In this document: positions 1 through 34,453 of the stretch, one piece after another
Layout: each line of letters begins with the position of its first letter
How positions within the stretch are numbered: the stretch's first letter is position 1
From: Chrysemys picta bellii
Taxonomy: Eukaryota
Length of the DNA: 64,000 bases
Direction: 5' to 3'
Assembly (NCBI RefSeq): GCF_011386835.1
Contig: NC_088814.1
Span: forward strand, 930,001-994,000
Notes under the pieces: model-generated
What the model saw: the letters and a program-made list of their open reading frames with translations, nothing else
The model's database searches: none
What the model was told of the DNA's origin: nothing
Made by a program: the position numbers and the translations under genes

Positions 1-47
1 CGCAAGTTCAAGCCAGATGCAGCGGAGCCGCCTTTGTTATTCAGGGA

Positions 48-303
48 CAGGGCCGGCTCCAGGTACCAGCAAAGGAAGCAGGTGCTTGGGGCGGCCAATG
101 GAAAGGGGCGGAACGTCCGGGTCTTCGGCAGCGGGTCCCTCGGTCCCTCTCAGAGCGAAGGATTCGCTGCCGAATTGCCGCTAAAGAATGAAGCAGGGCG
201 GTAGAGCTGCCGCCGAAGTGCCGCCAACCACGGCATTATATTTTCTTTTTTTTTTTTTCCCGCTTCGCTGCTTGGGGCGGCAAAAAAGCTGGAGCCGGCC
301 CTG
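48..303. mobile_element. Non-autonomous hAT-type MITE (family A, copy 1)
   Basis: Terminal inverted repeats CAGGGCCGGCTCC (48-60) and GGAGCCGGCCCTG (291-303); perfect 8-bp target-site duplication TTCAGGGA at 40-47 and 304-311. Confidence 0.9.
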
Positions 304-730
304 TTCAGGGATCACAGCTGTCAGCTGGCCCTGAGAGACGGAATCCAAAGCTCGGGGTCAGAGGATGAGAGGAGGCAGAGATGCATGCTCGCAATACTGT
401 GTGTCACAGGGATGGGGCAAAACACAGCCCTTGCCTTAACGTTGCTGCCAGAACACTGGCTGTGGTCAGTTGGACACAGAGAAGGCCTGGTACTGCAGAA
501 CATTCCCAGGTGATTGAGTTGCTGGACTGATTGCGGGAGGCCTGGTGGGTCACCACCTTAGACCTGACCAAAGCTCCTGGCAAATTTCCACTCCTTTTGG
601 CATCTTGGGAAGAAATGGCTCTTCACCCATAGGGCTCATCCTGTTTCTGAATCCTGCTCCTTGGATTACACAGTGCTGCCTGCAAGCCTGGACCTGGATC
701 CTTCAGCATTGTGGCCAGCACGCTTACACG

Positions 731-1845
731 TGCCAGCAAGTTAAAGAAGTATGGGCTGGATGAATGGACTGTAAGGTGGATAGAAAGCTGGCTAGATCGT
801 CGGGCTCAATGGGTAGTGATCAACGGCTCCATGTCTAGTTGGCAGTCAGTATCAAGCGGAGTGTCCCAAGGGTCGGTCCTGGGGGCGGTTTTGTTCAATA
901 TCTTCATTAATGATCTGGAGGATGGTATGCACTGCACTCTCAGCAAGTTTGCAGATGACACTAAACTGGGAGGAGTGGTAGATATGTTGGAGGGTAGGGA
1001 TAGGACACAGAGGGACCTAGACAAATTAGAAGATTGGGCCAAAAGAAATCTGATGAGGTTCAACAAGGACAAGTGCAGAGTCCTGCACTTAGGACGGAAG
1101 AATCCCATGCACTGCTACAGACTATAGACCGAGTGGCTAGGCAGCAGTTCTGCAGAAGAGGACCTAGGGGTTACAGTGAATGAGAAGCTGGATATGCGTC
1201 AACAGTGTGCCCTTGTTGCCAAGAAGGCTAATGGCATTTTGGGCTGTATAAGTAGGAGCATTGCCAGCAGATCGAGGGATGTGATCATTCCCCTCTATTC
1301 GGAATTGGTGAGACCTCATCTGGAGTACTGTGTCCAGTTTTGGGCCCCACACTACAAGAAGGATGTGGAAAAATTGGAAAGAGTCCAGCGGAGGGGAACA
1401 AAAACGATTAGGGGTCTGGAGCACATGACTTACGAGGAGAGGCTGAGGGAACTGGGATTGTTTAGTCTGCAGAAGAGAAGAGAAGAGAAGAGTGAGGGGG
1501 AATTTGATAGCTGCTTTCAACTACCTGAAGGGGGGTTCCAAAGAGAATGGATCTAGACTGTTCTCAGTGGTAGCAGATGACAGAACAAGGAGTAATGGTC
1601 TCAAGTTGCAGTGGGGGAGGTCTAGGTTGGATATTAGGAAACACTATTTCACTAGGAGGGTGGTGAAGCACTGGAATGGGTTACCGAGGGAGGTGGTGGA
1701 ATCTCCTTCCTTAGAGGTTTTTAAGGTCAGGCTTGACAAAGCCCTGGCTGGGATGATTTAGTTGGGGATTGGTCCTGCTTTGAGCAGAGGGTTGGACTAG
1801 ATACCTCCTGAGATCCCTTCCAACCCTGATAGTCTATGATTCTAA
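731..1845 (+). mobile_element. 5'-truncated CR1 LINE (ORF2 reverse transcriptase fragment plus 3' UTR)
   Basis: Translates to CR1 RT motifs ([48 protein letters not shown]) broken by a stop near 1125 and an (AGAAG)n expansion near 1471-1490; ends in a TCTATGATTCTA tail. Confidence 0.95.
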
Positions 1846-2246
1846 CTACTGCTCCAGGGATTTATCCCAGCTCCTGAAACCAGCCACCCCTAATGCCAGC
1901 CACCCCTCTGCATTGGCTGTTTTTTTTCTAGCTAGAGAAGATAAAGCCAGTGAAGAGCATTATTTACTTCCATCCTGAGGCTCTTCCCTTGCTTACCCAC
2001 ACCTGCTTGGCCAGGCACCTGCTGAGTGACATTTGTTTGCACGAATCTTTCCTTATTAGGGACAGCAACGCACTGGCTCACGTGGCTATTGCCCCTGGAG
2101 AAAGCCAACGGACCAAAACCCCACTAGGCAAGCAGCAGAGACGGCGTCTCACCAGGAGGGCACCAATCTTCAAAAGGTGACGTTTGGCCTGAGGTAACAG
2201 ACACTGGGATGTGGATGAGCCTGGGCTGAGAAATGCAACAGAAGTT

Positions 2247-2415
2247 ATAATAATATGGAGATATCCTATCTCCTAGAACTGGAAGGGTCATTGAGTCCAG
2301 CCCCCTGCCTTCACTAGCAGGACCAAGGACTGATTTTGCCCCAGATCCCTCTCAAGGGCTGAACTCACAACCCTGGGTTTAGCAGGCCAATGCTCAAACC
2401 ACTGAGCTATCCCTC
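2247..2415 (-). mobile_element. tRNA-derived SINE with CR1-like 3' tail (tortoise Pol III / Cry-type SINE)
   Basis: Reverse complement starts GAGGGATAGCTCAGTGGTTTGAGCATTGGCCTGCTAAACCCAGGGTTGTGAGTTCAG (tRNA A/B-box-like head), followed by a CR1-like tail and an (ATT)n end. Family name is from recall. Confidence 0.85.
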
Positions 2416-2852
2416 AAGACAGACTCCTAATGGAGAACCTCCCTCTCCCTGTTTCCCACCAGAAATCTTATCATGCCATGTTGGACAAGGGCCATTTCTT
2501 TGTGAAAGGACAGTTGGCTCCCACTTCCAATAGTATTTTAATTTGTCCAGTGGAATTTCCAGCTGGAGGGTTAGTGGTCCCCTGTTGACCCAACAGCGAC
2601 CAATGGAAGGACCTTGATGGAGTCTAGTGCAAGTCAGCATGGGTCAGCACCCTGGGCACTGCGGCAGGAAGCAGCAGACTTGGATTCTGTCTTACTTCGG
2701 TTACTCTCTGAGCTTGGTATTCTTGTCCCCTCAGTTTCCCCATTTAAGTGAGAACAATACGGTTGACCCAGCTCTGCGAAGCAATTCAAGAGCTAGGACT
2801 GAAGGTCTGATGTACGTGCAATGCATGCTCACTACAGCAGTTTGCACTAGAG

Positions 2853-3208
2853 CAGTGGTTCCCACACTGGGGTTTGCCAGAAAAATGTCACTAATGGCGG
2901 ACAGAGGACCCCGGGCATTGGAGACAGCAGGTGGGAGCCGGTTGCAGGGCAGACAGCCCGAGCCCCAGGGAGAGCGGGGCCGGGCAGTTGGGGCTGGCAG
3001 CCCGAGTCCCGGCGGTCAGCGGGGGAGCCGGCTGCCCGAACCCCAGTCCGAGCCCCAGGAAGAGCAGGGGCCGGGTAGCTGGGGCATCCCTCACACTGAG
3101 GAAATTTAAACTTAAATCCCTGAAAATACTCATTTTTAGGAGGGGGTTCGCGAGATTTCACCATTTAGCGAAAGGGGTTCGCGGGCTGTTAAAATTTGGG
3201 AACCACTG
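2853..3208. mobile_element. Non-autonomous hAT (Charlie-like) MITE
   Basis: TIRs CAGTGGTTCCC / GGGAACCACTG; 8-bp TSD CACTAGAG vs CCCTAGAG (7/8). Confidence 0.8.
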
Positions 3209-3889
3209 CCCTAGAGTATTTCCCATCTGCCGCTTCTTGTCAATCACTCTCCTCATCTCCCCACCGCCAGGAGCTCTCTGCCTTTCTGTCCCTGGCGAGT
3301 GGCTGGGATTCAGCAGGGTGGCTTTTCCCTGCAGAACCCCCAAACTCCAGTTCGTTTGGCGCTGGGAAGGGGGCAGGGGCTGCTGGTACCAGAATTCAGG
3401 CCAGAGCCTATTGCCGAACGCAGCTGGTAGGGCAGACTTCTCACCTATTCATCTGATGGACAGTTGCAAGTCACAGTTGCAGAGCATAGACAGACAAGGG
3501 TGGATGATGCAGGCCTCTTAAACCACCCGCCCCAGACCCACCACGCCTGAGCTTGCTACGGCTGCTTCAACCCTCGGCAAAATCCCAGAGGGCTTGGGAG
3601 ACATGGGTGAAACGTAAGAGGTTATGTAAAATGGGTTTGTGCATGTCCTGTGCCTCTCCCCGAGCCTGGGAGCTGCACACAGCAGTCTCAGCGCTAGAAG
3701 GTGAGCGCCAATGTCCCAGCCCGGGGAGTCGGGGGTGAGGTTCCTGTGACTGCTAGAAACGGATCTGCCAGCATCTCGTCTCCTGTAGGATTCACATTGG
3801 TTGGGTGCTCTAATGCTGCTCTCTGCTGGCCGAGCGTTGTGCTGCCGGGCTGAACCAGACAGTCGGCCAGTTACACTCATGCCACTGCC

Positions 3890-3950
3890 AAAGCTTATGC
3901 TCACATAAATTTGTTAGTCTCTAAGGTGCCACAAGTAATTCCTGTTCTTC
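3890..3950 (+). mobile_element. Short fragment of a turtle interspersed repeat, probably a Penelope-like element end
   Basis: AAAGCTTATGCTCACATAAATTTGTTAGTCTCTAAGGTGCCACAAG is shared with the minus-strand copy near 41118-41176; family assignment is from recall only. Confidence 0.5.
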
Positions 3951-4680
3951 GTGCCACTGCCCTGACTTCAGCGAGTCAGCCACAGGTACCCGAGAGCAGA
4001 ACGCAGGCTGCTGTAGCCGAGGTGGCCGCATCCCTCTCCCAGCGTTCGGGGATGGTGGGTATTAGAGTGCAGGTGTCTGGGGGAGGGAGCTGCACAGCCT
4101 GGTAACATGGGCGAGGGGTCTTGGAGCAGCACACAAAGATCTGAGCACCGTCTTTCAGCACTCCCGGGGGGAGGGGAGGAATGGCCTGAGCTACTGCGGG
4201 CAGCCCCTGGGCAAGAGGAGGTGACCCAGTAGCTGTTGGGCTCTGTACCCCCTAAGGCTCTGGGACTAGCTTGCACCTGCCGTTAAGATTCTTCACATAA
4301 AAGCCTCTTGGGTTCCCATGCACGCTCCCGGCTGGAACATACAGTGGACGAGGGTCCAGGAACGTGACCTCCCATTTCATCCAGAAAGGGAGGGGTTGTT
4401 GCCTTTATACCTGCGTCCACCCACCCCACGTTCAGTCTCGGGCTGTGCAACTTTTCCAGCCCACGGGACTGACCTCGCTTGCTGGCAGCCCACGGTGTCG
4501 ATCCACACCCTACGGCGTCTTTCAGGGGGGGCGTTGGCACTTTGGGCAGATATGTTCAAAAGGCCCTGTGGAGACTAGAGCTAAAGAGGAGATCAGAGCG
4601 AGAGATTTTACTCTGGAGAAAGGAGGAGGGTAGATGAGACACCTCCGCTACAAACATATATATAAACTTCATATATAAAC

Positions 4681-4682
<2 letters not shown>

Positions 4683-4736
<54 letters not shown>
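4683..4736. repeat. (CA)27 microsatellite
   Basis: Uninterrupted CA dinucleotide run, directly preceded by a doubled CATATATAAACTT motif. Confidence 0.98.
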
Positions 4737-4739
<3 letters not shown>

Positions 4740-5605
4740 CTAACACTACTCTTGGGATAGCCTAGGATTGGAACGTGGGCCTGGGCACTGTGTGTCAAAC
4801 ACAACACAAAGAGGGAAAACAGAGGGATGATTAGAAACAGAGAGTTCTGCAGTACCAGCCCTAAGACCGAAAGGAAACGAAAGACCCGCAGCTGGGAGAT
4901 AAAGACACCTGGGTCTTATCTAAATGAGTCCCAAGCAGGTGATGTTGGTTACCTACATCTTAGGGGATAAACAGCCTTTCCCTGTAACCCTTCAGCCTAC
5001 GTGGCCAATTCCCCCAAGCAGAAGGAGTGACAGAGAGTGGAGAGCAGACATATCCATCGAGGAAGCTAATACACAAACAGCAGTAATGAGACCAGGGCAA
5101 TTCTGGGATGTCCCTTATTGATTTACAACTGAAACATGCTCAGTGGTTGTCTTGAGAACTCTTCACTGTTTATCAGGTTTCAGATTTTGACGAATAGAGA
5201 TTCCTTAACTTCATTTCCTTCAACCGTGGAAATCGGTAAAATGACCAGTATTCCCCAGCCTTGCCTTTGCTTTTCATGGCAGCTCAGGGCTCCGTTCTCT
5301 CACTTTGCTATGAATCAGAGAGGTTACCCAGCAGCCTCCCAGCTATTAAGGAGTCCGATCAGCAGCAAAGCAAGTTAACACTTGCTCGCCATAACCAGAG
5401 TGAGGACACAAAAGGGGGCAGAGATAGAGAAACACTATTGATGGGCACACGCCAGGCAGGTCCCTCTCATACCAGAGAGAGGAGAAAAGCAGCACTCCCA
5501 AGTCCAAGAGAAACCTTATTTTGCAAATCTAAATGTACCTGGGAGGTCCTGAGACACTAAAAGGATGGGCACAAAATTAGAAAGAAAAGTTACACAGAAA
5601 CCTAC

Positions 5606-7175
5606 CTCCAACGTCCAAGTCCACTTTATAATTGATGGAATGGGTGTGTACCGTCCCCAGGGTGTGATCCCCAACCCTATTGCCATAGTCCAGACCGTCA
5701 CCATACAGAAAGGATGAAGTCATGTAGCCTGTGGCTTGGACTTTGGCCTCGATCGCGCCGTTCTGGTAGAAGATGAAGTCCCAGATGTAGTCATAGTTGC
5801 CCAGAGTGGCAATTGACCGAAGGACCAGAGCAGAGTTGGTCAGACCCCCGTAGTACAGGGACTGCAAGTTGGAGTAATGACGCCTCAGAGGAGACCCAGT
5901 GTTCTGCTCAAAAATGCAGATGGAGTTCTTATGCTTTTCAGGTGTGTCTGTTTCAACTAAGTAGTGTGTGTCTACGTAGGTGGCTGAATAGGGGCAATCA
6001 ACCCCCTGGACTAACGAGTACGTCAATCTCCCGATGCCAAAGCTCCCATCCATGTACCTGGTTGACATCCCTCCAGGACAGTTGGACCCATAGACAGATG
6101 TAGCATCCTGGACACTGATTTCATAGACAATCCTCTCCCCCTTAAATCTGATGTCAAAGAGACGCATCCCCGTGTTCACGTTCACCCCAAAGGCAAAGCT
6201 CCAGGCCTGCGAGACGACTTGGTTGTTTCGGACACTGTAGCGGGGCCCGTGCGGCTCGTACTGCAGAGGGAACGGAGCCCTGGGGGCTGCTCGGGGCTGC
6301 ATGGAAGAGAATCCCCCGTCGGGTGGGGCTCTCGTAACTGGGGCCACTTTGACACGGCCCTGCTTGAACTCGCTCTCCAGCTGCACCAAGTCCCCGTAGT
6401 ACTGGCCGTTATAGAACACTTTTCTCACCCGCCAGTGGGAGACGTCCAGGCTGCTGTGATCAACCAGCACCTCCAGCCCCACCGGGTGCAGGAAGTAGCC
6501 GCTCACGTTGTGGAACAGAGCAAACCAGGTGCTGCGGTCTCCGGACTGGAACCCCCGGGGGGCTGAGGTTAGTGATACAAAACTGGTCCCATCATAATTA
6601 AATACCTGATGCAGGAAGGTAGGGGCTGTTGAGAGCGCCTTCTTCCGTAAGAAGGTTTCAATCTGCTCATACTCCTTACCCAGCACCGGTCTGCGGTGAT
6701 ACGGCAGCTTCCCTCCGTACTTCTGCACCGTGATGTCCTGGTGAGTCGTCGGCTTGGGCAGGGGACCCACCACGTACTCCGTGACATTCGGATCTGGTTG
6801 GTTTCCAAAATACACCACAGCCAGCGCCTGCCGCGGGGGTCGCCTGCCCCCACGATCCAAGAACCCCAGCACCTCTGCCTTGGTGGGGATCTGCACATCG
6901 ATGTAGTAAATGCAGTTATCGGAGGGGTTTGCATTATAGGCGTCTACCAATGGCACCCCAAGGCTGCGCTGCAGGTACCTCACCACTTGCCCCATTTCTT
7001 CCGGCGTCAGATCAGCGAAGACCAGGCTCTGATCACTGTGCTTTCCCCCCTGGCTGCTCAGGGGCTGCGGCTCACAGCTGGCTGGTTTCACTCCTCTCGT
7101 CAGCAACACACAAACCAAAGCGAAGATCGTGGCTAGTGCCAAGACTAGGAGGATGAGGACAGTTTTCAGGTTCAT
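5606..7175 (-). CDS. AOC3: Copper amine oxidase (AOC3/VAP-1-like) giant coding exon 1, proximal copy; exons 2-4 not found in window
   Basis: 523 open codons + 1 nt from ATG: N-terminal hydrophobic anchor, catalytic Asp (YMDGSF), TPQ motif TLGNYDY, Cu ligands HTH, ending KVDLDVG G|GTAGG at the conserved phase-1 donor. Whether it is AOC3 or another AOC paralog is uncertain. Confidence 0.92.
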
Positions 7176-7853
7176 GTTGCTGCAGCCACGAAGGCAGAGG
7201 AGACTGTGAGGCTTCAGGAGCCACTTCCAGAGTGGTGTTCCCAGCTACAGGCAGCCCGTTTAAGATGCAGCTGAAGGGGTTAAGTACAGGAAACATGAGA
7301 TGTGGAGGCGAGGTGGGAGGAGGAGATATGAAGTTTGTGGGGACCAGAAAGGGCAGGTCTTCACTATCAGCCCGTCCAGCACGCTCTGTTACAGCGTAAC
7401 TGATCTACAGACGACCAGTTACAGAACAGGCGCCATTACTTGTTTGTTCAGACCAACTTCCAGAGGCTGCCTGTAGAAGTTGTGATCTAAACACTCAGCA
7501 TCAGTAGGGGGTGAAACCAAATCTTCAAAAGGCTGGAGATTTTTTGCTATAGTGCAGAATTTCATCCCTTCCCGACTCACTGAACTTGGACTGCTCCTGG
7601 GGTTCCTTCTCATGAACTCTCTCCACGGCGGCTAGGTTCTGGGTCTCAGTCGGATTTGCTCTTGCATTTCCTTGGTAAGCAGGGTGGTTGTATTGTTCTC
7701 TCTGATAAGGGTTTCATCTTGACTGTGGCTCTGGATTAACCAACGCTCGTTTGGGACAAAGACTAGAGCCTAGGGACACAGCAAATGTGGCGGAAGGAGC
7801 GAGGCGCTAGGTGATGATTTGGATGTTAATGCGCACTCAGGCCTTGCCTACAC

Positions 7854-8267
7854 CAGGGCCGGCTCCAGGCACCAGCCCACCAAGCTTGTGCTTGGGGCGG
7901 CACCTGGAGGGAGGCGGCGCGGTGCGGCCCTCCGGCTCCGGACGCTGGGGCCACGGCCAGGCTCGCCGCCCTCCTCCCAGGGCTCCGGCACCTTCCCCCC
8001 AGCCACCGGGGAGAGCGGAGCCCCAACCGGGCACTCCGCCCTCCTCCCAGGGCTCCGGCGCCTTCCCCCCAGCCACCGGGGAGAGCGGAGCCCCAACCGG
8101 GCACTCCGCCCTCCTCCCAGGGCTCCGGCCGTCCTCCCCCCGGCTGCCGGGGAGAGCGGAGCCCCGGCCAGGGCTCACCGCCCTCCCCCCGGGGCTCCAG
8201 CCGCCCTCCCCTCCCCCCGCGCGGGGGGGGGAGGGGGCGGGCGGCAAAAAAGCCAGAGCCGGCCCTG
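7854..8267. mobile_element. Non-autonomous hAT-type MITE (family A, copy 2) carrying an internal 70-bp tandem repeat
   Basis: TIRs CAGGGCCGGCTC / GAGCCGGCCCTG; perfect TSD GCCTACAC (7846-7853, 8268-8275); about three 70-bp units starting at 7971, 8041 and 8111. Confidence 0.9.
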
Positions 8268-9392
8268 GCCTACACAAAGGGAATCGACAGAGGTGCAGTC
8301 CTCTAATGGAGCCATGAAGCACAGCTGACGTCAGGGGCCTCTGATGGGGTTTGCATTGGGGTAACATCTCTAACAGACAAGGCCTCCCTTCCCCCCACCC
8401 ACGCCCCCGCCCCAATTGCAGGAGTCAGCATGTCTGGTTGCTAACATGAAGCAGGTCTTTGTGGGATGGAGGGGAGGCAGGGGACCCAGCTCCTACCGGT
8501 GCCATATCTGGCTGGGGGGGCGGTGCAAAGTGTCTCTTTCTTACGGTTCCCTTTTTGCAGAAGCCGTTTTAATTTAAAGACCCTCTCCCCCCCCAAAGCT
8601 GCTGCTCCCCTGGTGCTTCCCCAGAGCCCCTGCTGAACTGACGCCTTGCTGAGTTGCAGCCCGACAGACAGACCGACCTTCCGACAAGAAAACTGCGACC
8701 TGGTCTCTTAGCCTCATTGAGACGAATGGGGCTACAGTGCATAGACACTTAGACGACACCAATTGTTTCAGCCAGCAGATGGCGCGCGCAGTCGCACCAA
8801 ACCACCCTGGTGTGTAGGACGTTATATAAAACTCTCAAATAACCCCCCAGGGGAACTGCCGCTGGAAAACATGCCTGGCTGTGTCAAAACACGAGGAATT
8901 CAGCAGCCGCAAGGAGGCCAGTTTGGGGTCCGAGTCTTGGGCCCTGAACTACAAACGTTCCCAGAGATCAGTACATGCTTAGCACGGCACAAGCTAATCA
9001 GCTAATCCACAGTCGCTGGTATCCCTGCTTTACACTGGGGAAACTGAGGCACGCTGGGGAACGGTGACAACCCCAAGGTCACCGGGAGAGGCAGTGGTTA
9101 GAACTAGCAAGACCCTGGCTCCCACCCTATGCCTGACAACTGACGGGTGTAAGAAAAATACACACATTTCCAAACTGCTACCTTGCACGGTTTCCCTGGA
9201 GCAGCTGCCACTTGCTGGGATTCGCATGGCTGCTGGGGTTTGTGACGTTCCCTGACTCTTCATTTGAATAAGTCAATAAATAACATGGCAAAGAGCTCTA
9301 AGGGTAAGAAAGTGAGCAAGGATGCTGCTGCTGGCCATCTGCAAGAGTTCTGCATCTTGGGGCAGCCCCCACTCCTGCAGTTGGACAGAATA

Positions 9393-9605
9393 CAGGCAGT
9401 CCTCTACTTTATCACCTTCGACTTACGACGAACGGCACTTACGCCGTTTCTGAATGGACACCCTGATTCGACTTACGACAATTAGTTTCAACTTTAGGAT
9501 GTTCGGTCCCGCAATAGAGTGGATTGCGGTTCCGAGTTAGGACGTTTCGACTTACGACGCAATTTTCAGGAATCAATTTTGTGTCCTAAGTCCGAGGACT
9601 GCCTG
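9393..9605. mobile_element. Tc1/mariner (Tigger-like) MITE
   Basis: TIRs CAGGCAGTCCTC / GAGGACTGCCTG flanked by TA on both sides; internal repeated TTCGACTTACGAC motifs. Confidence 0.85.
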
Positions 9606-9665
9606 TAGCATGTAATAAGTGAGAGGCACAGGAGAGAGAGAAAGAAACATCACCAAGAGACCTAC

Positions 9666-11235
9666 CTCCAATGTCCAAGTCCACTTTATAATTGATGGAA
9701 TGGGTGTGTACCGTCCCCAGGGTGTGATCCCCAACCCTATTGCCATAGTCCAGACCGTCACCATACAGAAAGGACGAACTCATGTAGCCTGTGGTTTGGA
9801 CTTTGGCCTCGATCGCGCCGTTCTGGTAGAAGATGAAGTCCCAGACGTAGTCATAGTTGCCCAGAGTGGCAAGTGACCGAAGGACCAGAGCAGAGTTGGT
9901 CAGACCCCCGTAGTACAGGGACTGCAAGTTGGAGTAATGGCGCCTCAGAGGAGACCCGGTGTTCTGCTCAAAAATGCAGATGGAGTTTTTATTAATTCTA
10001 GGGTTTGGGGATTGAGCTAAGTAGTGTGTGTCTACGTAGGTGGCTGAATAGGGGCAATCAACCCCCCGGACTAACGGGTACGTGAATCTCCCGATGCCAA
10101 AGCTCCCATCCATGTACCTGGTTGACATCCCTCCAGGACAGTTGGACCCATAGACAGATGTAGCATCCTGGACACTGATTTCATAGACAATCCTCTCCCC
10201 CTTAAATCTGATGTCAAAGAGACGCATCCCCGTGTTCACGTTCACCCCAAAGGCAAAGCTCCAGGCCTGGGAGACGACTTGGTTGTTTCGGACACTGTAG
10301 CGGGGCCCATGCGGCTCGTACTGCAGAGGGAACGGAGCCCTGGGGGCTGCTCGGGGCTGCATGGAAGAGAATCCCCCGTCGGGTGGGGCTCTCGTAACTG
10401 GGGCCACTTTGACACGGCCCTGCTTGAACTCGCTCTCCAGCTGCGCCAAGTCCCCGTAGTACTGGCCGTTATAGAACACTTTTCTCACCCGCCAGTGGGA
10501 GACGTCCAGGCTGCTGTGATCAACCAGCACCTCCAGCCCCACTGGGTGCAGGAAGTAGCCGCTCACGTTGTGGAACAGAACAAACCAGGTGCTGCGGTCT
10601 CCGGACTGGAACCCCCGGGGGGCTGTGGTCATAGCTGCTAAATTAGTTCCATCATAATCAAGTACTTGATTCAGGAAGGTTCGAGCTGTGGGAAACGCCG
10701 TCCTCCGTAAATAGCCAGCAATCAGCTTGTACTCAGCATCCAGCACCGGTCTGCGGTGATACGGCAGCTTCCCTCCGTACTTCTGCACCGTGATGTCCTG
10801 GTGAGTCGTCGGCTTGGGCAGGGGACCCACCACGTACTCCGTGACATTCGGATCTGGTTGGTTTCCAAAATACACCACAGCCAGCGCCTGCCGCGGGGGT
10901 CGCCTGCCCCCACGATCCAAGAACCCCAGCACCTCTGCCTTGGTGGGGAGCTGCACATCGATGTAGTAAATGCAGTTATCGGAGGGGTTTGCATTATAGG
11001 CGTCTACCAATGGCACCCCAAGGCTGCGCTGCAGGTACCTCACCACTTGCCCCATTTCTTCCGGCGTCAGATCAGCGAAGACCAGGCTCTGATCACTGTG
11101 CTTTCCCCTCTGGCTGCTCAGGGGCTGCGGCTCACAGCTGGCTGGTTTCGCTCCTCTCGTCAGCAACACACAAACCAAAGCGAAGATCGAGGCTAGCGCC
11201 AAGACTAGGAGGATGAGGACAGTTCTCAGGTTCAT
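9666..11235 (-). CDS. AOC3: Copper amine oxidase (AOC3/VAP-1-like) giant coding exon 1, distal copy; no exons 2-4 found before the next copy
   Basis: Same length (1570 bp) and same phase-1 donor (KVDLDIG G|GTAGG) as the 5606-7175 copy, offset exactly 4060 bp; open frame with Asp, TLGNYDY and HTH intact. Confidence 0.9.
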
Positions 11236-14200
11236 GTTGCTGCAGCCACGAAGGCAGAGGAGACTCCTGGAGCTTTACAGCAGCTCCCAGAGAAGCTGCC
11301 GTCAGCCTGTTTGGACTGTGGCTGGATGGTTAGTACAGGAAACATGAAAGGTGGAGAGAGGCTGGGGGAGGAGATCTGAAATTTGTGGGGACTAGAAAGG
11401 GAAGGTCTTTGCTCCCAGCCCATCCAGCACGCTCGGTGGGCCTCCAAGCGCACTGCATTAGGAAAACTACTGGAGCCGCAGGGCCAGTGACTCATAAGAC
11501 AAATTTCACATCATTATGTCGCTTTTTTTAGTTTGGCCAGTTTGCTTAGGTTCCCACGAGGGCTGGGATGGTGTTGTCAGCATCAGGTTAGGGAATGGAG
11601 GTGGGCACATTACCAGCCTGTGAGAGTGGAGATTTCACCACCACAGCTTAGAATTTCACCTCTTTGCATTTCACTGAGTTTCCCTAATGTCCCAGGCTCT
11701 TTCCTTCCGCACACCCACGCCCTGGCAGTGTGGTTTTGGGTCCCAGTTTGACCTCCAGCAGCAGGTCCTGTGTGGAGGAACGTGCCCAGCTATGGAATAG
11801 CCAAAGGGATGGGGCAGCCCCGGCCAGGTCATTTAGGGCCTTAGTCTCAGCACCCAAATCACAATTACTAATTAGCCCCAGCATCATGCCCCTGCACAGC
11901 CTGTCATTAGCCAGTCTTGGTCACACTCCCATGAGACACCTCAGGGTCATTATTAGCCCTGCTCCGTGGGGCGAGAGGAGATGACTTCCTGCAGGGCACC
12001 GGGAGAGGCAGAGCCAGGGTTAGCACACAGGAGTCCCTGGATTCCACCCTCTCCCCAGGCTGCCTGGCCGCACACTGGTGACCAGCTTGGTACCGGATGG
12101 GCGGGTTCAGGGAAAATAGAAGGCACATTTTCCCTGGACTGAGCATGGCGCTGGCAGCCTCCTGCTGGAACTCCCACTGGTTAGCATGACTTTTCCAGCC
12201 TCACTTTAATAAGTGACTGTTTTCCTTGGTCTCCCTGAACCTCCAGAAAGGCGCAGGTGTCCCAATGTGCTGGTGAGACAGAGACAGGAGCCTGAGACTG
12301 TTCTGCAGAGAGCAGAGATCTGGGGCGCACAAGCCCTGCCGGATCTCCAGCCTGTGCTGAACACACAAGGAAACCAAGAGTCAAAGCAAGTTTCCATTCC
12401 TGCTGCCAGCCTCGCCTCACCCCTGCCTCCCCTCCCTCCCTCCTCCTGCAGGCAACACTCACTCTTTCCTGCTGGGGGCAGGTTGCTTCCTCCTCAGGCA
12501 GTTCCACCTTTACTTCGTCCATTGCAGCTTCCCTCACCTTGGCTTTGGACCCACCCCCCTGCCCTGTGGAGAAGCATTTAGCCAGCGCTGCTCTTGACAA
12601 AGTACCTACATCATCCCAGCAGCCTTCTCTGGCCTCGTCTGCAGCTGCGAAGACAGACACAAGCGGACTCATGTCATTTCTGAGTCCTTGGCAGCTAGTC
12701 TAGCGCTGTGGCGAGGGCAGGAGCCGCTGCGGTCACCATTCACCACAAGGCCTGTTGGCAGGAGAATTGGACACATGGCTACCCCAGAAACATGCATCTT
12801 CCATTCTGTGGGACTCGCTAGTATCACCCCTGCAGACAACACGAACCCAGGGAGGAGACAATCCAGGAGTGGCCCGTACAGCAGCCGGCTAAGAGCGATG
12901 CAATGACAGTTCACATCTCCTCTAAGCGGTCTAAAGCCAGGCACGGGCTGCAAACACAGTGCTTTTCTCAGTGACAGCGAGTGCTTAAAGAAAGGTGGAG
13001 AAGCCCTACAGCCGCCTGGATCCAGCGCCGAGGGAGCTTCAGGATGGCCTGAACACAAAGGCTTGGGACTTGTTCGGTGTGTTTCGATATAGATCTAAGC
13101 TCACTAGTTACCCCACAGTAAAAACCAACCAACCCACGCTAATGAGCGGCCTATTTGTGGGGAAGGATACAGCAACGTGGAGGGAATTTGCTCTTCTCTG
13201 CTACTGCTCCCACGAGTTTCGAGCCTGTGTATATGCCCCAGGATGTCCCAGTGCAGCGCAGTCTAAACGTGCAGTACTTGATACCGTCTACTTCTGTGGC
13301 ACTTTTCCAGCTGAGGGATCTGAAAGCATTTGATAAAGTTCTCCAGAAGGACAGCAGCCCCCCACTGCAGGCCATTTTCAGAGTAAGTGGAGAACAAACC
13401 TGAATCCATTTCAAACTGCCAGGGAAATTTCAGGAAGCAAATGAAATGAACTGAACAGCAGCACAGCCGGGACACCTGTGCAAACACTCCGACTCTTACG
13501 AAAAGTGAGCTGGCTTCTTTAAGAAGCACAAGTGCTAAAGGCCTTGGTTTTGTCTCAACTAAGAACACCTCCAGCAGCTAGCTAACTCGGAACGTAGAAA
13601 GTATCAAGTCTTCTTACTAGCAGCAACACAACTTTATTCCGTTTCAGAGCGTGTACCCCGTTCTACACGTCCTAGCCAGCCGCAGTACGGAACTTCTCGC
13701 AGCCCTGCCCCAGAGAATTCACTTCCTGCTGAGGTTTATTTTAGCTAAATTCCTTTTTGGAACCACCTATTGCTACATCCTGGGTTTGGTAAATTGCCCA
13801 CCTCTTCCTGCCCCCCTGAAGGAGTGAGAAGGGAAGAGTTTTGTGTTGTTCTGAGGAGAGCAGACTGTGCAGCTCACACAACAAGAACAGCTGCACAATC
13901 CGTCTCTGCAACATATCGGAACCAAACCCAAAGCCAGCCAGCGGCAGCACCAGAATGCCAGCCACCTGGGCAGGAAGCACATTACTCGACTCCCCAGGAG
14001 CTGGCTGGGTCTGTCTACTTGCAGGCAGAACTCCGGCTGCAGGGAGGTTTACGTTCCTTGTGCTCCCATTTTCTCCTGGCTGCTAGTTACATCATTTTAA
14101 ATGTCAAAGTAAGTTTGCTCGATGCTCATTCACCCTCATTATATTGTCTGCAGGGACGGGGCAGTTGGCTGCTGTGTCTTGTTGCCCTTTGATGGGCACT

Positions 14201-15905: not shown

Positions 15906-17411
15906 AACGGGAAGACGAAGATTGGACTTACTACAAACAACAACGAAGGAGTCTATCGAAAGGGCAGGGGGCCCTCCACGCTCAGAGCAACCCCTGGGAA
16001 ACCAGCAAGAGACAACGGGGCTCTTCAGCATAGAAGAAGAAACAAAAGCAACAGAACGCAAGAGGGAAGGAGAGGACGTTCATTCCATTTCTCACGACTA
16101 ACAACTCTAAGGCTACTGCACAAGAAGTTACAGGTGTGACAGTGAGACCCATGGAAGCTACAGGGGTCCAAGACCAACTGACCCAGCTTTCCCCTGAAGG
16201 AGGGTGTGAAGTAAAAATACCATAAATAAGAAAACGTAGAAGAAACCTGCAGCGTCATGAGCCCGTTTCCCACACATACAAAAACTGACCATGCAACCGA
16301 CCGTTTCCCATGGGGTTTGCAATGGGCCTGGGAGGAGCGCCTGGGCACAGGAGAAGGAATCGAGGTACCTTTCACGGGGTGCTGAGGTTCTGATACTGAT
16401 CTGCTGTGGCTGCTTTTGGCCGTCCTCATTCCAAAAGGTCAGCCATCGCAGCCAGCCTGCCCAACCCTGCCCCCCAATACACTCGGCAGGCGACTGTGCG
16501 TCACAACCTGCTAATTCCTTCGCATCAGTGGAGACTACGAGGACTTCACAATTTGAGCTCAGGCCTCTCCCTAACTTCATTCTGGACAGAAATGCCTCAC
16601 GCCGAAGGAGACGTGTGAGAGTTTAACATCGGTTTGAACCAAGAAAACTGCTTTTGTAGAGCCAAGAGGAAAGCTATGCACAGGAGCGAAAGCCACCCGG
16701 GCTCTGAACCTGCCAACTTAGCGGGACGTGACTGGGTGGCAGGTGCTCCACATAGCCCTCTGCACGGATCTAGCTGCATTTCACAAGGGAGAGGGACAAA
16801 CTGGGTGGGATCTAAAGTAAGATAGCTCTTTCCTGGCTTGTTCGAACCTAAAAATCTCTCCATGGCACTTTGCTGAGCGCGGCTGCAGCCTGGGCTAGGG
16901 GAGCCGCCTGCTCCAAAGGGGCACGTCCTCCCAGCCTTGCATTTAACAAGCATAAGACAACTAGCAGCAGAGGGGTCACTCAGCTGGCACTGAGAAGCAG
17001 CTGGCTTCTCGCAGGCAGCACACACTCTGTGGACTCACTCTAGTGCTGAAGACACTGCATCTCCTCCATTCCCAGGGACCCCAAGGAAACCCTGCAGCTG
17101 ACAGATGGGGGGCGAGGGGGAGAACCCCAGGGCTCGGTCTCTCATCCAATTCCCACCTAGCTAGGAAGAAAGGCTTGAAGGAGCATTCCCATCCCATGGC
17201 AGTGGCCCGCTCAATACCAATTACTACATTAGGGAGAGTTCCTGAGACCTGAACAAAACCAATCACAGAACTAGGCGAGGGTTTCTTTAGAGTTTAACTA
17301 AGAGTGCAATACTATTTCCAGCCAGTTTCCCATCTCGATAGTCACGTAACAAACCAAGGCAATGACGGTCTTTGAGTTGACTGAACAGTTCTCAAGTTCA
17401 AACGTTGACAC

Positions 17412-20400
17412 TTAGTAGAGAGTCTCAGCGTTGCTGCTCCGAGGCCTCTTGATCTTCTCAATGTTTTTAAGGATCATATCATGCAAAGTGACCTGGAAGG
17501 AGGAGGAGAAAGACCATGGATGCACGTCAAGAGTGGGACGTCCACGATTTGACTTAACTCCACTCTCACCATAAGCACTGGCCTAACCTGAGTAATGGCT
17601 GCTCTTAGTTACAGCCCCTTAGCCCTTCCCCACCTCACCAGCCCTTGCCCTCAAGCAGCATGTCATGTCTCATGTCAGGCAGTAAGCGCCTTAGGCAAGG
17701 CCTCGCCTGTCTGCACTCTGAAGAGACCAGCATGTTTTGGCCACTGAAAGCTCCACCGACGAGAGTGAGTTAGTTAACGGCGCCCAGGACTGGCCTACGC
17801 CATCTGGAGAGGTTGGGACGGAAGGTTCCAGCAAAGAGCACAATGAACTGCATGGCCCAGGACTCAGCCCAGAGGCGGGAAATACCAGACTCTTCAGGGC
17901 AGCGAGTCGCCGCTCTCTCTGCTTGCTAAGAGCAAAGGGAAAGCAGAGGCCCAGGCTCTGAGGTGGGATGGATCCCAAGGGTGCTTCTCCACAGGGGAAC
18001 GCATGAGCCGGGGTCCCAACTCTAACTCACATATTGATTCCTCAGCTCGGAGATGATTAAGCGCAGACTAATGTATTCCTTCTCATCAATTTCTGTCACC
18101 GTGCGGCGATAATCCTCCTACACAGAGAAGGGAGAACGTGGCTGTGAATAGCCTAAACGCCAGGCTGCCCCTCCCTCTACAGACATCAAGGGGGCTCTCT
18201 CCTGTTCAATCTCATGCATTCAAGGGCACGAGGGGACCGTTGTGATCATGTAGTGGGGCCCCCTGTATAGCACAGGCCAGAGACCTGCCCCAAATAATTC
18301 CTACAGCTGAGAGTTTAGGAAAACCTCCAATCTTGAGTTAAAAATTGACAGTGATGTAAAATCCACCACGACCCTCAGGAAACCGTTCCAGTGGTTAGTT
18401 ACTCCCCCGGTTAACACCACACACCTTATTTCCGGTCTGGATTTGTCTGGCTTCAGCTTCCAGCCAATGGATCGTATTAGACCTTCCTCCGCCAGACTGA
18501 AGTGCCCAGTATCAAATATTGGTCCCCCCGGTAGCTACTTCTAGACTGTGATCAAGTCACCCCTAAACCTGCTCTTTGACTAAATAGATTGAGCTCTTTG
18601 AGTCTCTCACCATAAGGCAGGTTTTCTAATCTTTTAATCATTCTCGCAGCTCTGCTCGGAGCCCTCTCCAATTTATCAACCTCCTTCTTGAATTGTGGAC
18701 ACCCCACAACTAGAGACAGGATTCTGGTAACAGCTGCACCAGTGCCAACACAGAGTTAAAATCACCTCTCTGCTCCCGCTCAAAATTCCCCTGTTTATGC
18801 ATCCTAGGATCACATTAGCTCTTTTGGCCACAGCATCACACTGGGATCCACCATGACCCCTAGATCTTTTTCTGAGTCACTGCTTCCCTACATTCTTTGT
18901 TCCCAGAGGTACATTTATCCATATTAAAACAGATATGGTTTGCTTGCACCCAGTTTACCAAGCAATCAAAATCACTCTGAATCTGTGACCTGTCCTCTTC
19001 ATTACTTACCACCCCCAATTTTTGTCAACTGCAAACTTTATTACTGATGATTTTGTGTTTTCTTCCAGGTCATTGATAAAGATGTTAAATAGTATAGGGC
19101 CAAGAACTGATCCCTTCAGGATCCCACTGGAAACAGACTCGTTCAATGACGATTCCCCATTTACAATTACATTTTGAGACCTATCAGTTAGCTGGTTTTT
19201 AATCCATTTAATGTGGGCCATGTTCATTTTATCTCATTCTAGTTTTTTAATCAAAATGTTGTGTGGTACCAAGTCAAACGCCTTACAGAAGTCTAAGTAT
19301 ATTACATCAACACTATCACATTTATTAACCAAACTTGTAATTTTATAAAAAAAATGTATCAAGTTAGTTTGAAAGAATCAGTTTTTCATAAAACCATGTT
19401 GATATGCATCAGTTACATTGTCTTCCTTAGTTCTTTAGTAATCAAACCCCATATCAGACACTCATTGTCTTGCCTGGGATTGCTGTCAGGCCTATTATTA
19501 CCCAGGTACTCCCATTCACCCTGTATATACTGGCACAACATTAGCTGTCTTCCAGTCTTCTGGAACTTCCTCAGTGCTCCAAGACTTATTGAAAAAAAAT
19601 CAACATTAACAGTCCAGCGAGCTCCTCAGTCAGCTCTTTTAAAACTCCTGGATGCAAGTTATCTGGACCTGCTGATTTCAAAATGTCTCACTTTAGTAAC
19701 AGCTGCTTAACATCCTCCAGAGATACTAGTATAGTGGAAATAGTGTTATCACCATAGGCTGAGACTGTATGGTCTGTTTTTCCCCCCCCCAAATGTAGAA
19801 CAGAATTATTTAGTGACCATTTTCACCTTTTCTGTGTTATTATTGGTAATTCTACCATCTCCATCTAGTAATGGACCAATACCATTGGCGGGTTCTTTTT
19901 GTTCTTCATATATTTTAAAACTCCCTCTTAATGCCCTTTATTCTACTGGCCATAGATTTCTCCTTGTGTCTCTTTGCATCCCTTATCGATTTTCTACAAT
20001 TCCTAACTTCTGATTTATATTTATTATTATGAGTTTTCTTTTCCCTTGAGAGAAGCCAGATCCTTCCAGCCCTGCAGGCTCCCCTCCCAGGGCTCCTAGC
20101 CACCACAGGGTCCCTCCGCCAACCCTCCAGGCTCCCAGGCCCCACAGGACTCTGGCAGCTGCTGCTTAAGGGAGTCAGTGATAGAAACAGCCAGTCGAGG
20201 GCTATCCACAGAAACAGAAAAACAATTAATTCTCTCCAACCCCAGCAAACGCTCAGCAAAGAGATGCTCCACTTACCACATGAGGATATTTTGCTATTTT
20301 GGAAACCAGCTTTGCCCTTGTGATATAGTATCTGGAAGGGAAGAGGGTAGATTTAATAGTCAGAAAATAGCAAAGCAGTGTTCTCAGACCTTGCCTTAGC

Positions 20401-23400
20401 CACGGGGCTCAAGTCCTTACCCAAAAGCACTCAGCCTCCCCAGAGAGGGACCCAGCGAAGATTGCTCATAGCCACCCCTTCCCCACCTCCACCTACCTAG
20501 AAATCTGGTCCAGATACGAAGCTGCCTCGCTCTCCACAGTCCGCAGCTCAGCCACCGTCTCCTCCTGCAAGGGAGCCACGGACACAGAGTGAGTGAGCTT
20601 CACAGCAGAAGCAAGAAACTCCAACCCCACTCACGTGTGCAGCCACCCAGGGTCCAGCAGCTCAGTCTCTGGCCACCTTTAAAGTTGCAACAGCTACTCG
20701 TCAGGGTAGAATCAGACACAGGTTTCGAGCCTCAGTCAGTTAGCGAAGGTTACAGGAACATAGGAGCCAGCAGGAACCATCAGTTCCTGGCCATAATGAC
20801 CCCCTGCACCAGCCCCACACAGCCCTACAAATTAAGGCTGCTGATCCTCTGAGCAAGGCAGACAAGTTCCTGGGAGATTCAGGGAAGAAAGCAATGCAAA
20901 TAGCTTCACACAACCACCCTGATCCTGCCAGGTTAGGGTGCTGGGTGGAGCACACAGCCTTCCTCAAACATGGGTCAGCTTTACTGGGTCTTGCAAAACT
21001 ATGGCACGGCTCCCAGGCCTCTGAGCAAAGTGAGGCTTTTAGGCCCTCTCTGCCCCTCCCTCTTAGATGCCAGGGAAGGATTCAGGTTTCAACGACCCCT
21101 CGAAGAGCCCTTTGGAGGCAGAGCCAGGTGGATCTAATGAAAGGCTCCTCAGAAGCCCAAGATGCCCTGGCGTCTGGGGCACTGGCACATAAAGGAGCCA
21201 TGTGGCCACGGGTCACCTTACCTGAATAGAAACGCCAAAGTTGTTTCCATCTTCTATCCTGGGGATCAGAAGCTGCACCCACATTTTGACCTGGAGGGAC
21301 GCAAAATGACCCTGTGACTGACTGAGTGCAGACAGCACTGGAGGGCCCTGCCTTTAAATCAGGACCTCTTATTGGGGGCCCTCGGAAACTCTCGCTCGAG
21401 CAGCTCATCCCAAGACCGTCTCAGGGCCTGGCTCATGCGGGGACTGGGGACAAGGCCCGATGCCTTGACCTCTCCTGGGAGCCCAGGACATCCACCCAAG
21501 CATTAAGGGAAGATTCTGTCCCTCGATTTTACTGAAGCCCCACTCAGCAAGTATCCGCCACAGGCGTGCCTGGTGCTGTACAACGTCACAGAGACGCAAG
21601 CCCTTCCAAGCAAAGGACTGGCAGGAGGGAGCTAGCTGAGGGCTGCAGTGACTTCAGGCACTGGAGTCAGGGCAGCTCCAAGCACATTTGGGAAATGCAC
21701 CTGCCCCTTTGGGCAGCATCCTCTTCAGAGGCCACGAGAAGCGGGGGAGAGGCGGAGTCCTACATGGCCTTATCCTCGAGGTAGGATGGAGGCCTAGTCC
21801 ACTCTTTATGGATCCCTGAGAAGCCCTGATGCTATGGGGCAGGAATTTGGACAGCTGGGTCTGGGGGCTGGTTGCCGTACTGCCCCATGCTCAGGCCCAC
21901 ACCCACCGTGTTGCACTTCTCAATCAGCAGCCTGATCTCCGGTTTCACTTTCTCAATGATGTCCACTAGCTGCTGGTTACTCTTCAGCATCCCATTGGGC
22001 ATCACAAACACTTTGGTACCTAGCGCCAGAGGGGAAAGGTCAGTTATTCACAGCAGCTCACCTCAGAGACCGCCAGCTCTGCACGTGTGCTAACCACGCT
22101 GGATCACCGTGGGGACAGGGATATTTAACAGGCTATTACAAAGACTACCACACGGGAAGGGGAAGAGAGACAAGACCCGGGAAGAAACCCAAACTGGAGA
22201 AACAGGGTGCAAAGGGAGCTCCCTGAGGCACACGTAGGAGCTGCCTCTGTTTCAATGCAGCACGAGGCCTGGCAGCTCCCTCCTTCCACGAAGGGGTCAG
22301 GCGGCTCTAAGTCTGCTCCCTCCAGCAGCATGCCAGCTCCCATGAGCCCTACTCCAGTCTCTTGGGAGAGGCCAAGCTCTGCTCAGCAGAACCACTAGTG
22401 GGCTCCTCCGTGACTCAGTTTGTAAGAGGAAAGACGGACAGGCCTGGGTAGGGCAGTGGCAGTCGGGAGAGGGCAGGTGGAGCTTGTGCAGTTTCATACC
22501 CCTAGGCACGGAGCGCTGGCTCAGCGGGCAGGCAGCAGCACAGAGACTTGGGGACTCTTACCCTGGAAGGTCTCTTCACAGTCTTCCAGCTTCCTCTTTT
22601 TCATATTTGGCTAAAATACATACAACAAAACGTTTTACTCCCCAACCACCCGGGACTTAGCGCGACAGCAGCGAGGAAATTTCTTACAGAACATCTTCGA
22701 GGGTCCTGATTTCAGAGCAGCCTTCCCCCTCCAACTGGGGCTGGGTTACAGAGCAAACACAGCACCACCTCCAGCCAGGATCCACGGGCTGAAGAGACCA
22801 GTTCTCACATGCTCACGGGCGGCTGTGGCCTGTCGTTAACAGGGAACAGCCTAACCGAATGCACAGCAGGCCATGCAGGTTTAATTAATGTAGCCAAGGG
22901 AGGAATCTTACCCCGTCCAGTGCATCATGGCTGTTAGTGAGAAGGATCGGGTCAGGGACAGGAAGGTTCATGTCTGAGTGGATCTGGGTGAGATCATGAA
23001 TATTCAGGATGGACTCCTGGAAAACAACAAGAAGTCACATACAAATCTAACAACTTTTGTCATGTTAATCGCCAGGAAATGGGAGATTCCAGACCTCAGG
23101 TTTCATCCAGCCACCAGGCAAGCGAGAACAGAGGCAGGTAGGAAGATGGGACTGAGAGGACTAGGAAAATGGATTGTAAGTTTGGGACCGAACCCGTTAG
23201 GTTTCTATCCAGTGCCCAGCTGATGGGATCCATACACTATCACAGTCCGTAAGAGACACTGGGCCGAGTGTCATGGGCTAATGGCATTCAAATGGGTATA
23301 AAGCAAGTTTGGGACACTGCTATTCTCTGTTTTACTCTCTGCTCTGACTAAAGACAACCCCTCCCCAGGGTCAGGATTGCATGCTGGACACTGAAGTGAA

Positions 23401-29289: not shown

Positions 29290-34453
<5,164 letters not shown>

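Follow-up and report, generated by a model that had tools for sequence, protein, structure and literature searches.

Do two intact first exons of a copper amine oxidase, standing in tandem with none of the remaining exons between them, belong to two genes, or are they alternative beginnings of one? The question is raised by the 64,000 nucleotides of the painted turtle, Chrysemys picta bellii, considered here (contig NC_088814.1, positions 930,001 to 994,000; "the window" in what follows). An earlier note, made from these letters alone, had proposed that both exons are spliced to a common set of constant exons lying to the left of the window, and had named as the alternative that the distal copy is a young orphan exon. 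Our data suggest that the two copies, which are of the AOC2/3 type and are called P (proximal) and D (distal) below, are probably alternative first exons spliced to one shared set of exons 2-4.

The list of open reading frames and a pairwise DNA alignment place both copies on the minus strand, with the following parts:

5606..7175, minus strand: P, AOC first exon, with ATG, membrane anchor, D2, D3 and most of D4; 523 codons plus 1 nt
9666..11235, minus strand: D, AOC first exon, intact; 44 residues unlike P
5604..5605, minus strand: GT donor of P, phase 1, G|GTAGGT
9664..9665, minus strand: GT donor of D, phase 1, G|GTAGGT; kept in six of seven turtles, GA in Chelonoidis
7176..7533, minus strand: 5' flank and 5' untranslated region of P, transcribed to at least 7533 in run X1 (contig 6684-7533)
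11236..11450, minus strand: 5' flank of D, a putative promoter, with about 200 nt homologous to the P flank

Each copy is 1570 nt long (523 codons plus 1 nt), begins with its own ATG (at 11235 in D and 7175 in P) and, with the exon ends trimmed to the conserved ...VDLD(V/I)GG, runs into the same phase-1 donor. The offset between them is exactly 4060 nt, and there are zero indels across the exon. Homology extends upstream of the ATG for about 200-220 nt at 70-84% identity, and is gone within about 20 nt downstream of the donor. Because of this low flank identity and the end of homology near the donor, the flanks must be old, while the exon bodies are nearly identical. The earlier note's description of the pair, with its open frames, donors, spacing and homologous upstream flanks, is confirmed in all of these points. 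The two copies differ at 73 of 1570 nucleotides and 44 of 523 residues, and the differences cluster in residues 166-204 and 384-415, which define two patches:

10596..10769, minus strand: D patch 1, approximately residues 156-213, differences at 166-204; resists gene conversion
9910..10114, minus strand: D patch 2, differences at 384-415; includes the match to human Tyr394 and the AQSPNPRIN loop, which corresponds to human 417-425
6536..6709, minus strand: P patch 1, counterpart of D patch 1
5850..6054, minus strand: P patch 2, counterpart of D patch 2

Long near-identical stretches at a regular spacing might also be expected if the second copy were a duplication introduced by the assembly, as the earlier note had considered. 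The 73 fixed differences, the unrelated flanks, the same arrangement in seven independent turtle assemblies and in other sauropsids, and the presence of D-specific words in RNA assemblies as well as in the genome-sized contig sets X30-X32 make such an artefact next to impossible. A young duplicate was also considered and ruled out, given the unrelated flanks and the presence of the pair in all turtles examined.

Where, then, are the remaining exons? A tblastn search with three full-length turtle AOC proteins found no match for residues 525-756 in the 64-kb window, even at E<=10, and the window contains no N runs. Exons 2-4 are therefore absent between the copies and in 1-5605, as the earlier note had stated. 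Permissive tblastn and blastn searches for relics of exons 2-4 between D and the true exon 2 returned chance-level matches only (E>=0.065). In a protein search, the first 523 residues of a 756-residue painted-turtle amine oxidase match P; the current RefSeq product is P0122, to whose exon 1 the P exon is 100% identical. D is modelled by NCBI as a separate product, P0148, of 549 aa, in which translation runs on from the D exon into the intron behind it. The locus record L002 overlaps the window over 17,175 nt with 0 mismatches (L002 x corresponds to window 17176-x) and carries exons 2-4 at 21955-22260, ~23235-23465 and 23949-24236, which puts them 4.8-7.1 kb beyond the left end of the window. 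Exon 2 lies 10.4 kb from P and 14.4 kb from D:

1..5603, minus strand: first 5.6 kb of the 10.4 kb intron 1, leading to exons 2-4 (probably shared) beyond the window

Further along, at L002 28739, begins the next complete AOC gene, with an exon 2 of its own at 32647. The order on the painted-turtle contig is thus two first exons, exactly one set of exons 2-4, and then a separate whole AOC gene, and the one set of constant exons that the earlier note had placed left of the window is found there. One RefSeq isoform, P0132 (658 residues, L002:10001-24236), contains P exon 1 and exon 2, but the sequence that follows ...AISWG is a different one, apparently through variant splicing near exon 3.

Transcription of the two copies was followed in assemblies of sequencing runs. 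As a D-specific query we used the 31-mers found only in D within a 174-nt stretch. Between 77 and 100% of these words occur in the transcriptome-sized assemblies X1-X3, X8 and X9, which come from three studies, and 0 in other runs of the same species; the genome-sized contig sets X30-X32 (1.7-2.1 billion letters; the kind of run is not on record) contain 100%. In addition, contigs (not raw reads) of X1, X2, X8 and X9 were aligned to window 5480-11450. P is fully covered by RNA contigs, and P patch 1 has contigs at 6536-6709. Contigs of X1, X2 and X8 share the same loose end at 5605, where the reverse-complemented sequence, GGTGAATAATACTCTGGTGGCCCATGACAT / GGTGAATAATACT..., is that of exon 2 (GVNNTLVAHDM). 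Because exon 2 follows P at 5605 in these contigs, X1, X2 and X8 represent spliced RNA, and they show that P is spliced to exon 2.

D has contigs of its own. Patch 1 is represented by 174 nt (10596-10769) in X1 and X2 and by 151 nt in X8, and patch 2 by a D-specific contig of 137 nt (9910-10046) in X1. In X1 and X2, the D contigs have a depth of about 10-14 where P has 25-32, and in X8 the figures are about 2 and about 130; contig depth is a poor measure of expression. Over 8280-9679, depth is essentially zero, including the 366 nt behind the D donor that are translated in the 549-residue model. The contigs show that D is transcribed, and without read-through. This bears on the reading of D as an independent single-exon gene, whose truncated 549-residue protein with an intron-encoded end would have a non-catalytic role, for example in adhesion or as a dominant-negative partner. 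Exon-1-only products are indeed predicted by RefSeq and other pipelines in many turtles, birds and squamates. We nevertheless judge this reading very unlikely: RNA contig depth is zero over 9280-9679 behind the D donor against 10-14 at the D patches, the read-through tails vary among species in length and sequence (529-585 residues) and so are not under selection, the strong donor is conserved, and the product would have neither the third copper histidine nor the C-terminal part of D4.

Among 16 variant sites, six (window 5786, 5898, 6210, 6249, 6890 and 7090) show the D letter in P contigs, which stem from other individuals. Either the assembler has merged paralogue bubbles, or gene-conversion tracts or polymorphisms are segregating. 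Because isolated single-base differences between D and P are unassignable in contigs, only the dense patches were relied on. Some contigs end in other ways. X9 contains 77% of the D patch-1 words, yet almost none of its contigs align at 98% likeness. Contigs of X8 and X9 follow the P-specific 5' region as far as 7204, where they pass into unrelated sequence with no canonical splice signal, and a 287-nt contig of X9 matches only 33 nt (11209-11241) around the D start codon; an upstream non-coding exon or a paralogous 5' region is possible at both places. A candidate acceptor, CTGCAG|CAAC, precedes each ATG immediately. If the D donor were joined to it, a stop would follow after two codons, and no such joint occurs in the contigs.

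Is D maintained, and by what? We compared the locus in seven turtles (Chrysemys, Chelonoidis, Dermochelys, Emydura, Macrochelys, Platysternon and Caretta). In 90-nt windows, divergence between D and P of the same species is 0-0.03 over most of the exon, against 0.05-0.11 between orthologues, and it rises to 0.16-0.23 in residues 151-210 and 391-420 in nearly every species. The exceptions are Chelonoidis, in which patch 1 has been homogenised between D and P, and Emydura, in which patch 2 has. In a maximum likelihood tree of the non-patch columns, D pairs with P by species in all seven cases, mostly with 100% support, while in a tree of the patch columns the D copies cluster by type. Codons 407-417 of D patch 2 (AQSPNPRINKN) show zero nucleotide change across five lineages of hidden-necked turtles and a single one in Chelonoidis; the intron sequence that follows the D donor has diverged by 0.07-0.18 among hidden-necked turtles (about 0.12), with a mean of 0.142 over the seven species. 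Upstream of D, the block from -61 to -120 (~11296-11355) has a p-distance of 0.047 among turtles, against 0.10-0.17 around it, which lends indirect support to an independent promoter of D. Because conversion from P cannot keep sequence that is absent from P, the D-specific patches and the D flank look constrained in their own right.

The position of the patches in the protein suggests what might be defended there. The 549-aa D product and the 756-aa P product both have the Pfam families PF02727, PF02728 and PF01179 (N2, N3 and catalytic domains) on record, and the best match among solved structures is human VAP-1 (E=2.8e-291). Exon 1 encodes the membrane anchor, D2, D3 and most of D4, with the topaquinone tyrosine, the catalytic Asp and two of the three copper histidines. 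The motifs LGNYDY, RYMDGSFG and GTVHTHS, which align to the human 470-472, 386 and 520-522 regions, are present in both copies, and the catalytic parts (NYD, catalytic Asp, HTH) are identical between them. The third copper histidine occurs nowhere in the window and once on the contig, in exon 4 (L002 23949-24236; FLHIPHAED in P0122). It would be available to D, together with the C-terminal part of D4, through the splice to exons 2-4 that we infer. The alignment of P0122 to human VAP-1 gives the following correspondence for residues that differ between P and D:

turtle 166: G in P, D in D, human VAP-1 Phe173
turtle 170: E in P, K in D, human VAP-1 Leu177
turtle 173: E in P, A in D, human VAP-1 Asp180
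turtle 201: S in P, A in D, human VAP-1 Thr210
turtle 202: L in P, M in D, human VAP-1 Met211
turtle 384: L in P, F in D, human VAP-1 Tyr394

Patch 1 thus covers human 173, 177, 180, 210 and 211, and patch 2 covers 394. These six residues line the active-site channel or its entrance in human VAP-1, and residues 173, 177 and 180, which differ between human and rodent VAP-1, have been invoked to explain species-specific inhibitor binding (PMC7144023). The rest of patch 2, corresponding to human 417-425, is not mentioned in that review of VAP-1 (PMC7144023), so that the documented channel role in patch 2 is that of 394 only. Because the differences between D and P concentrate on channel positions of human VAP-1, the idea that the choice of first exon selects the substrate channel gains support from the alignment. 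The splice from D to exon 2 on which the choice would depend is not seen in contigs.

How old is the pair, and how widespread? Next to D lies a gene that serves as a landmark, and that is the upstream neighbour of AOC2/AOC3 in mammals, too:

17213..21473, minus strand: PSME3 (PA28 family), 3' part, upstream neighbour; 87.8% identity over 4.3 kb to the leatherback PA28 region of L003

The order PSME3, D, P is found in all seven turtles, with P 3.5-4.2 kb beyond D. The D frame is open for at least 522 codons in every one of them, and the donor reads G|GTAGGT in six. Since the side-necked Emydura has the D/P pair, the pair is older than the turtle crown. The earlier note's alternative of a young orphan exon has to be given up in view of this age and of arrays with several copies of exon 1 in falcon, lizard and alligator. 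In Chelonoidis, where the donor is lost, the D product also has several odd substitutions, and D may be decaying. In Emydura macquarii, P exon 1 (L004, start 13456) lacks 1 nt at alignment column 1333, which is either a true frameshift or a fault of the assembly.

The leatherback has two products of 756 aa, one beginning at D (L003 10001) and the other at P (13641), with a common end at 26224; the locus has a single constant set, and P0145 (isoform X2) has D-type patches followed by exons 2-4. In the lesser kestrel, Falco naumanni, three first exons are intact and stand at intervals of about 4.1 kb (L008 5903, 10001 and 14095; span 5903-15665), all with the same donor context, and a single constant set follows at 17446-18897; the first two carry a D-type patch 2. 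The lizard Elgaria has two first exons, only 63% identical, and in the models each of them leads to the same exons 2-4, which end at 25772 (isoforms X1/X2, P0064/P0069). In Alligator mississippiensis, an intact exon 1 stands next to PSME3, in the position of D, and the sole exons 2-4 are 13.6 kb away, with two frameshifted exon-1 relics in between (L010:13614-15172 and 21271-22843); RefSeq product P0009 makes exactly this 13.6 kb splice from the intact exon 1 to the only exons 2-4. Goshawk isoforms X8/X9 (P0066/P0067) differ only around patch 2 and have a common C-terminus, and their models apparently join alternative first exons to shared exons. A D-type patch-2 exon is joined to exon 2 in many bird models. 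We verified the genomic architecture beneath these cross-species models directly. In the comparison with other turtles, crocodilians and birds that the earlier note had asked for, D and P are present in 7 of 7 turtles, and arrays occur in falcon, alligator and lizard.

We lean, without strong conviction, towards a broader claim, namely that the membrane copper amine oxidase of sauropsids is a true variable-first-exon array, with two to three first exons that have separate promoters and share one constant set. It would have existed at least since the turtle crown and probably since before the sauropsid lineages split. Conversion would homogenise the copies and selection would keep the channel patches apart, giving isoenzymes with different amine specificities and possibly heterodimers, and different lineages would have silenced different exons.

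The same comparison bears on the reading that D, though transcribed, is a functionless remnant of a gene now lost, such as one in the AOC2 position by PSME3 that has shed exons 2-4, with a frame kept open by conversion from P and transcripts that are non-productive. Conversion between D and P is pervasive and could mend damage passively. In Chrysemys, moreover, RefSeq leaves D unconnected to exons 2-4, the D donor has mutated to GA in Chelonoidis, and exon-1 copies within the alligator array can decay. Conversion cannot, however, explain conserved D-specific patches that are absent from P. In patch 2, five lineages do not differ by a single nucleotide, while the intron has diverged by about 12%. 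D has kept its frame and its donor from a time that predates the turtle crown, and the block upstream of it is conserved. In birds, a D-type patch 2 turns up again in models spliced to exon 2, and the survivor in the alligator is the exon in the D position. We therefore consider a relic unlikely.

If D and P are alternative first exons, as we think probable, each would have its own start codon and conserved 5' flank and the same strong phase-1 donor, with a single constant set downstream. A transcript started at D would skip P, which as a first exon has no productive acceptor, and the donor at 9665 would be joined to exon 2. D and exons 2-4 together would then encode a second 756-residue enzyme. 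Gene conversion would hold D and P near-identical outside the two patches, and selection would hold the patches apart. As the patches cover channel residues of human VAP-1, the choice of exon could set substrate or inhibitor specificity. The promoters of D and P would be independent, and the catalytic specificities of the two enzymes would differ.

Several observations weigh against this model. The junction between the D donor and exon 2 occurs in no Chrysemys contig (X1, X2, X8, X9), and no contig covers 9666-9679; of the junctions from both donors to the same exon 2 that the earlier note had envisaged, the one from 5605 is present in contigs and none is from 9665. NCBI models D as an exon-1-only read-through in Chrysemys, Trachemys, Chelonoidis and Emydura. 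The cross-species models that join D to exons 2-4 are automatic predictions whose transcript support is not inspectable. In Chelonoidis abingdonii, the D donor is GA instead of GT (L001:11571-11575), and because this D has lost its GT donor, D is dispensable in at least one lineage. The pairwise ratio of nonsynonymous to synonymous change is only moderately low in the D patches, at 0.48 against 0.27 elsewhere in the exon (seven species, including the two converted lineages, which inflate the figure). Finally, the patches may persist passively if conversion is blocked by local divergence.

The first of these points has a technical side. The junctions of D and of P with exon 2 would differ by 1 base, 6 nt from the splice, where the minus strand has A in D (window 9672) and G in P (5612). 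Because an assembler would merge a junction that differs by one base into the abundant P form, the missing contig says little. The contigs gave no joints of any kind, including any between the D donor and other parts of the window. If D were spliced elsewhere or read on, its transcripts would form their own graph branch and contig, and the contigs fit a splice from D to exon 2 instead, although this is an argument from absence.

How does the proposed arrangement compare with known ones? In UGT1A, variable first exons are spliced to common exons 2-5. On the strength of general knowledge of UGT1A, the turtle locus is alike in having tandem homologous first exons, each of which brings a start codon and a 5' flank and ends in a same-phase donor, one constant set, first exons that hold the presumed determinants of substrate specificity and, in some AOC lineages (alligator), dead copies within the array. 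It differs in that there are only two to three variable exons, that the variable exon makes up about 70% of the protein and includes the cofactor tyrosine, the catalytic base and two metal ligands, that the copies are homogenised by conversion save for two patches, and that no contig of this species joins D to exon 2. In clustered protocadherins, promoter choice picks a large first exon that is spliced to shared exons, and the acceptor-less first exons in between are skipped. The same choice of first exon would apply to the AOC locus, which is unlike the protocadherins in that the array is tiny, the product is an enzyme and not an adhesion receptor, and nothing points to a stochastic choice of promoter. 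The tandem AOC2, AOC3 (VAP-1) and AOC4 genes of mammals are of the same family and share with turtle AOC the PSME3 neighbour, the content of exon 1 and the four-exon layout. The mammalian paralogues have their own exons 2-4 each, whereas in the turtle two first exons (three in the falcon) share one set.

A full-text literature search, which included a family-wide phylogeny of 2025 (PMC12058724), found neither alternative first exons nor concerted evolution described for vertebrate AOC genes. Automatic models of the leatherback (P0145), Elgaria (P0064/P0069), goshawk (P0066/P0067) and alligator (P0009) already join alternative first exons to shared exons, but they are unremarked predictions, and the painted turtle's own model of D is exon-1-only. 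The arrangement is implicit in some RefSeq isoform sets, and the unusual feature is the presence of channel patches that resist conversion.

If the model is true, a redox enzyme family joins the short list of loci that diversify proteins by first-exon choice, and the exchanged module would be more than a binding domain, as it would include the cofactor and the substrate channel. The locus would also be a natural experiment, since conversion erases all differences but those defended by selection and would in this way point to the residues that tune amine specificity. The patch positions are those that drug designers use for species differences in VAP-1 inhibitors. Many of the exon-1-only amine oxidase entries of reptiles and birds are probably mis-modelled alternative first exons, and counts of sauropsid AOC genes would then need revision.

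Some features of the window lie outside the exons. The earlier note had seen two miniature inverted-repeat transposable elements (MITEs) in the spacer between D and P; one element flanked by terminal inverted repeats stands, and the second was not confirmed:

7844..8277, no strand assigned: MITE-like element in the D-P spacer, with 22-nt inverted ends and four 70-nt GC-rich tandem units inside

RNA contigs break off at 7852-7857 and at 8268 of this element with many different continuations, which is why we regard it as a multi-copy mobile element. Within intron 1, downstream of P, window 711-1556 (plus strand) carries a fragment of a long interspersed nuclear element with two adjoining reverse-transcriptase-like open reading frames (e.g. 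FADDTKL). Window 42000-64000 is very GC-rich (0.64-0.73 G+C), with a strong GC skew at about 48-50 kb, unlike the remaining window.

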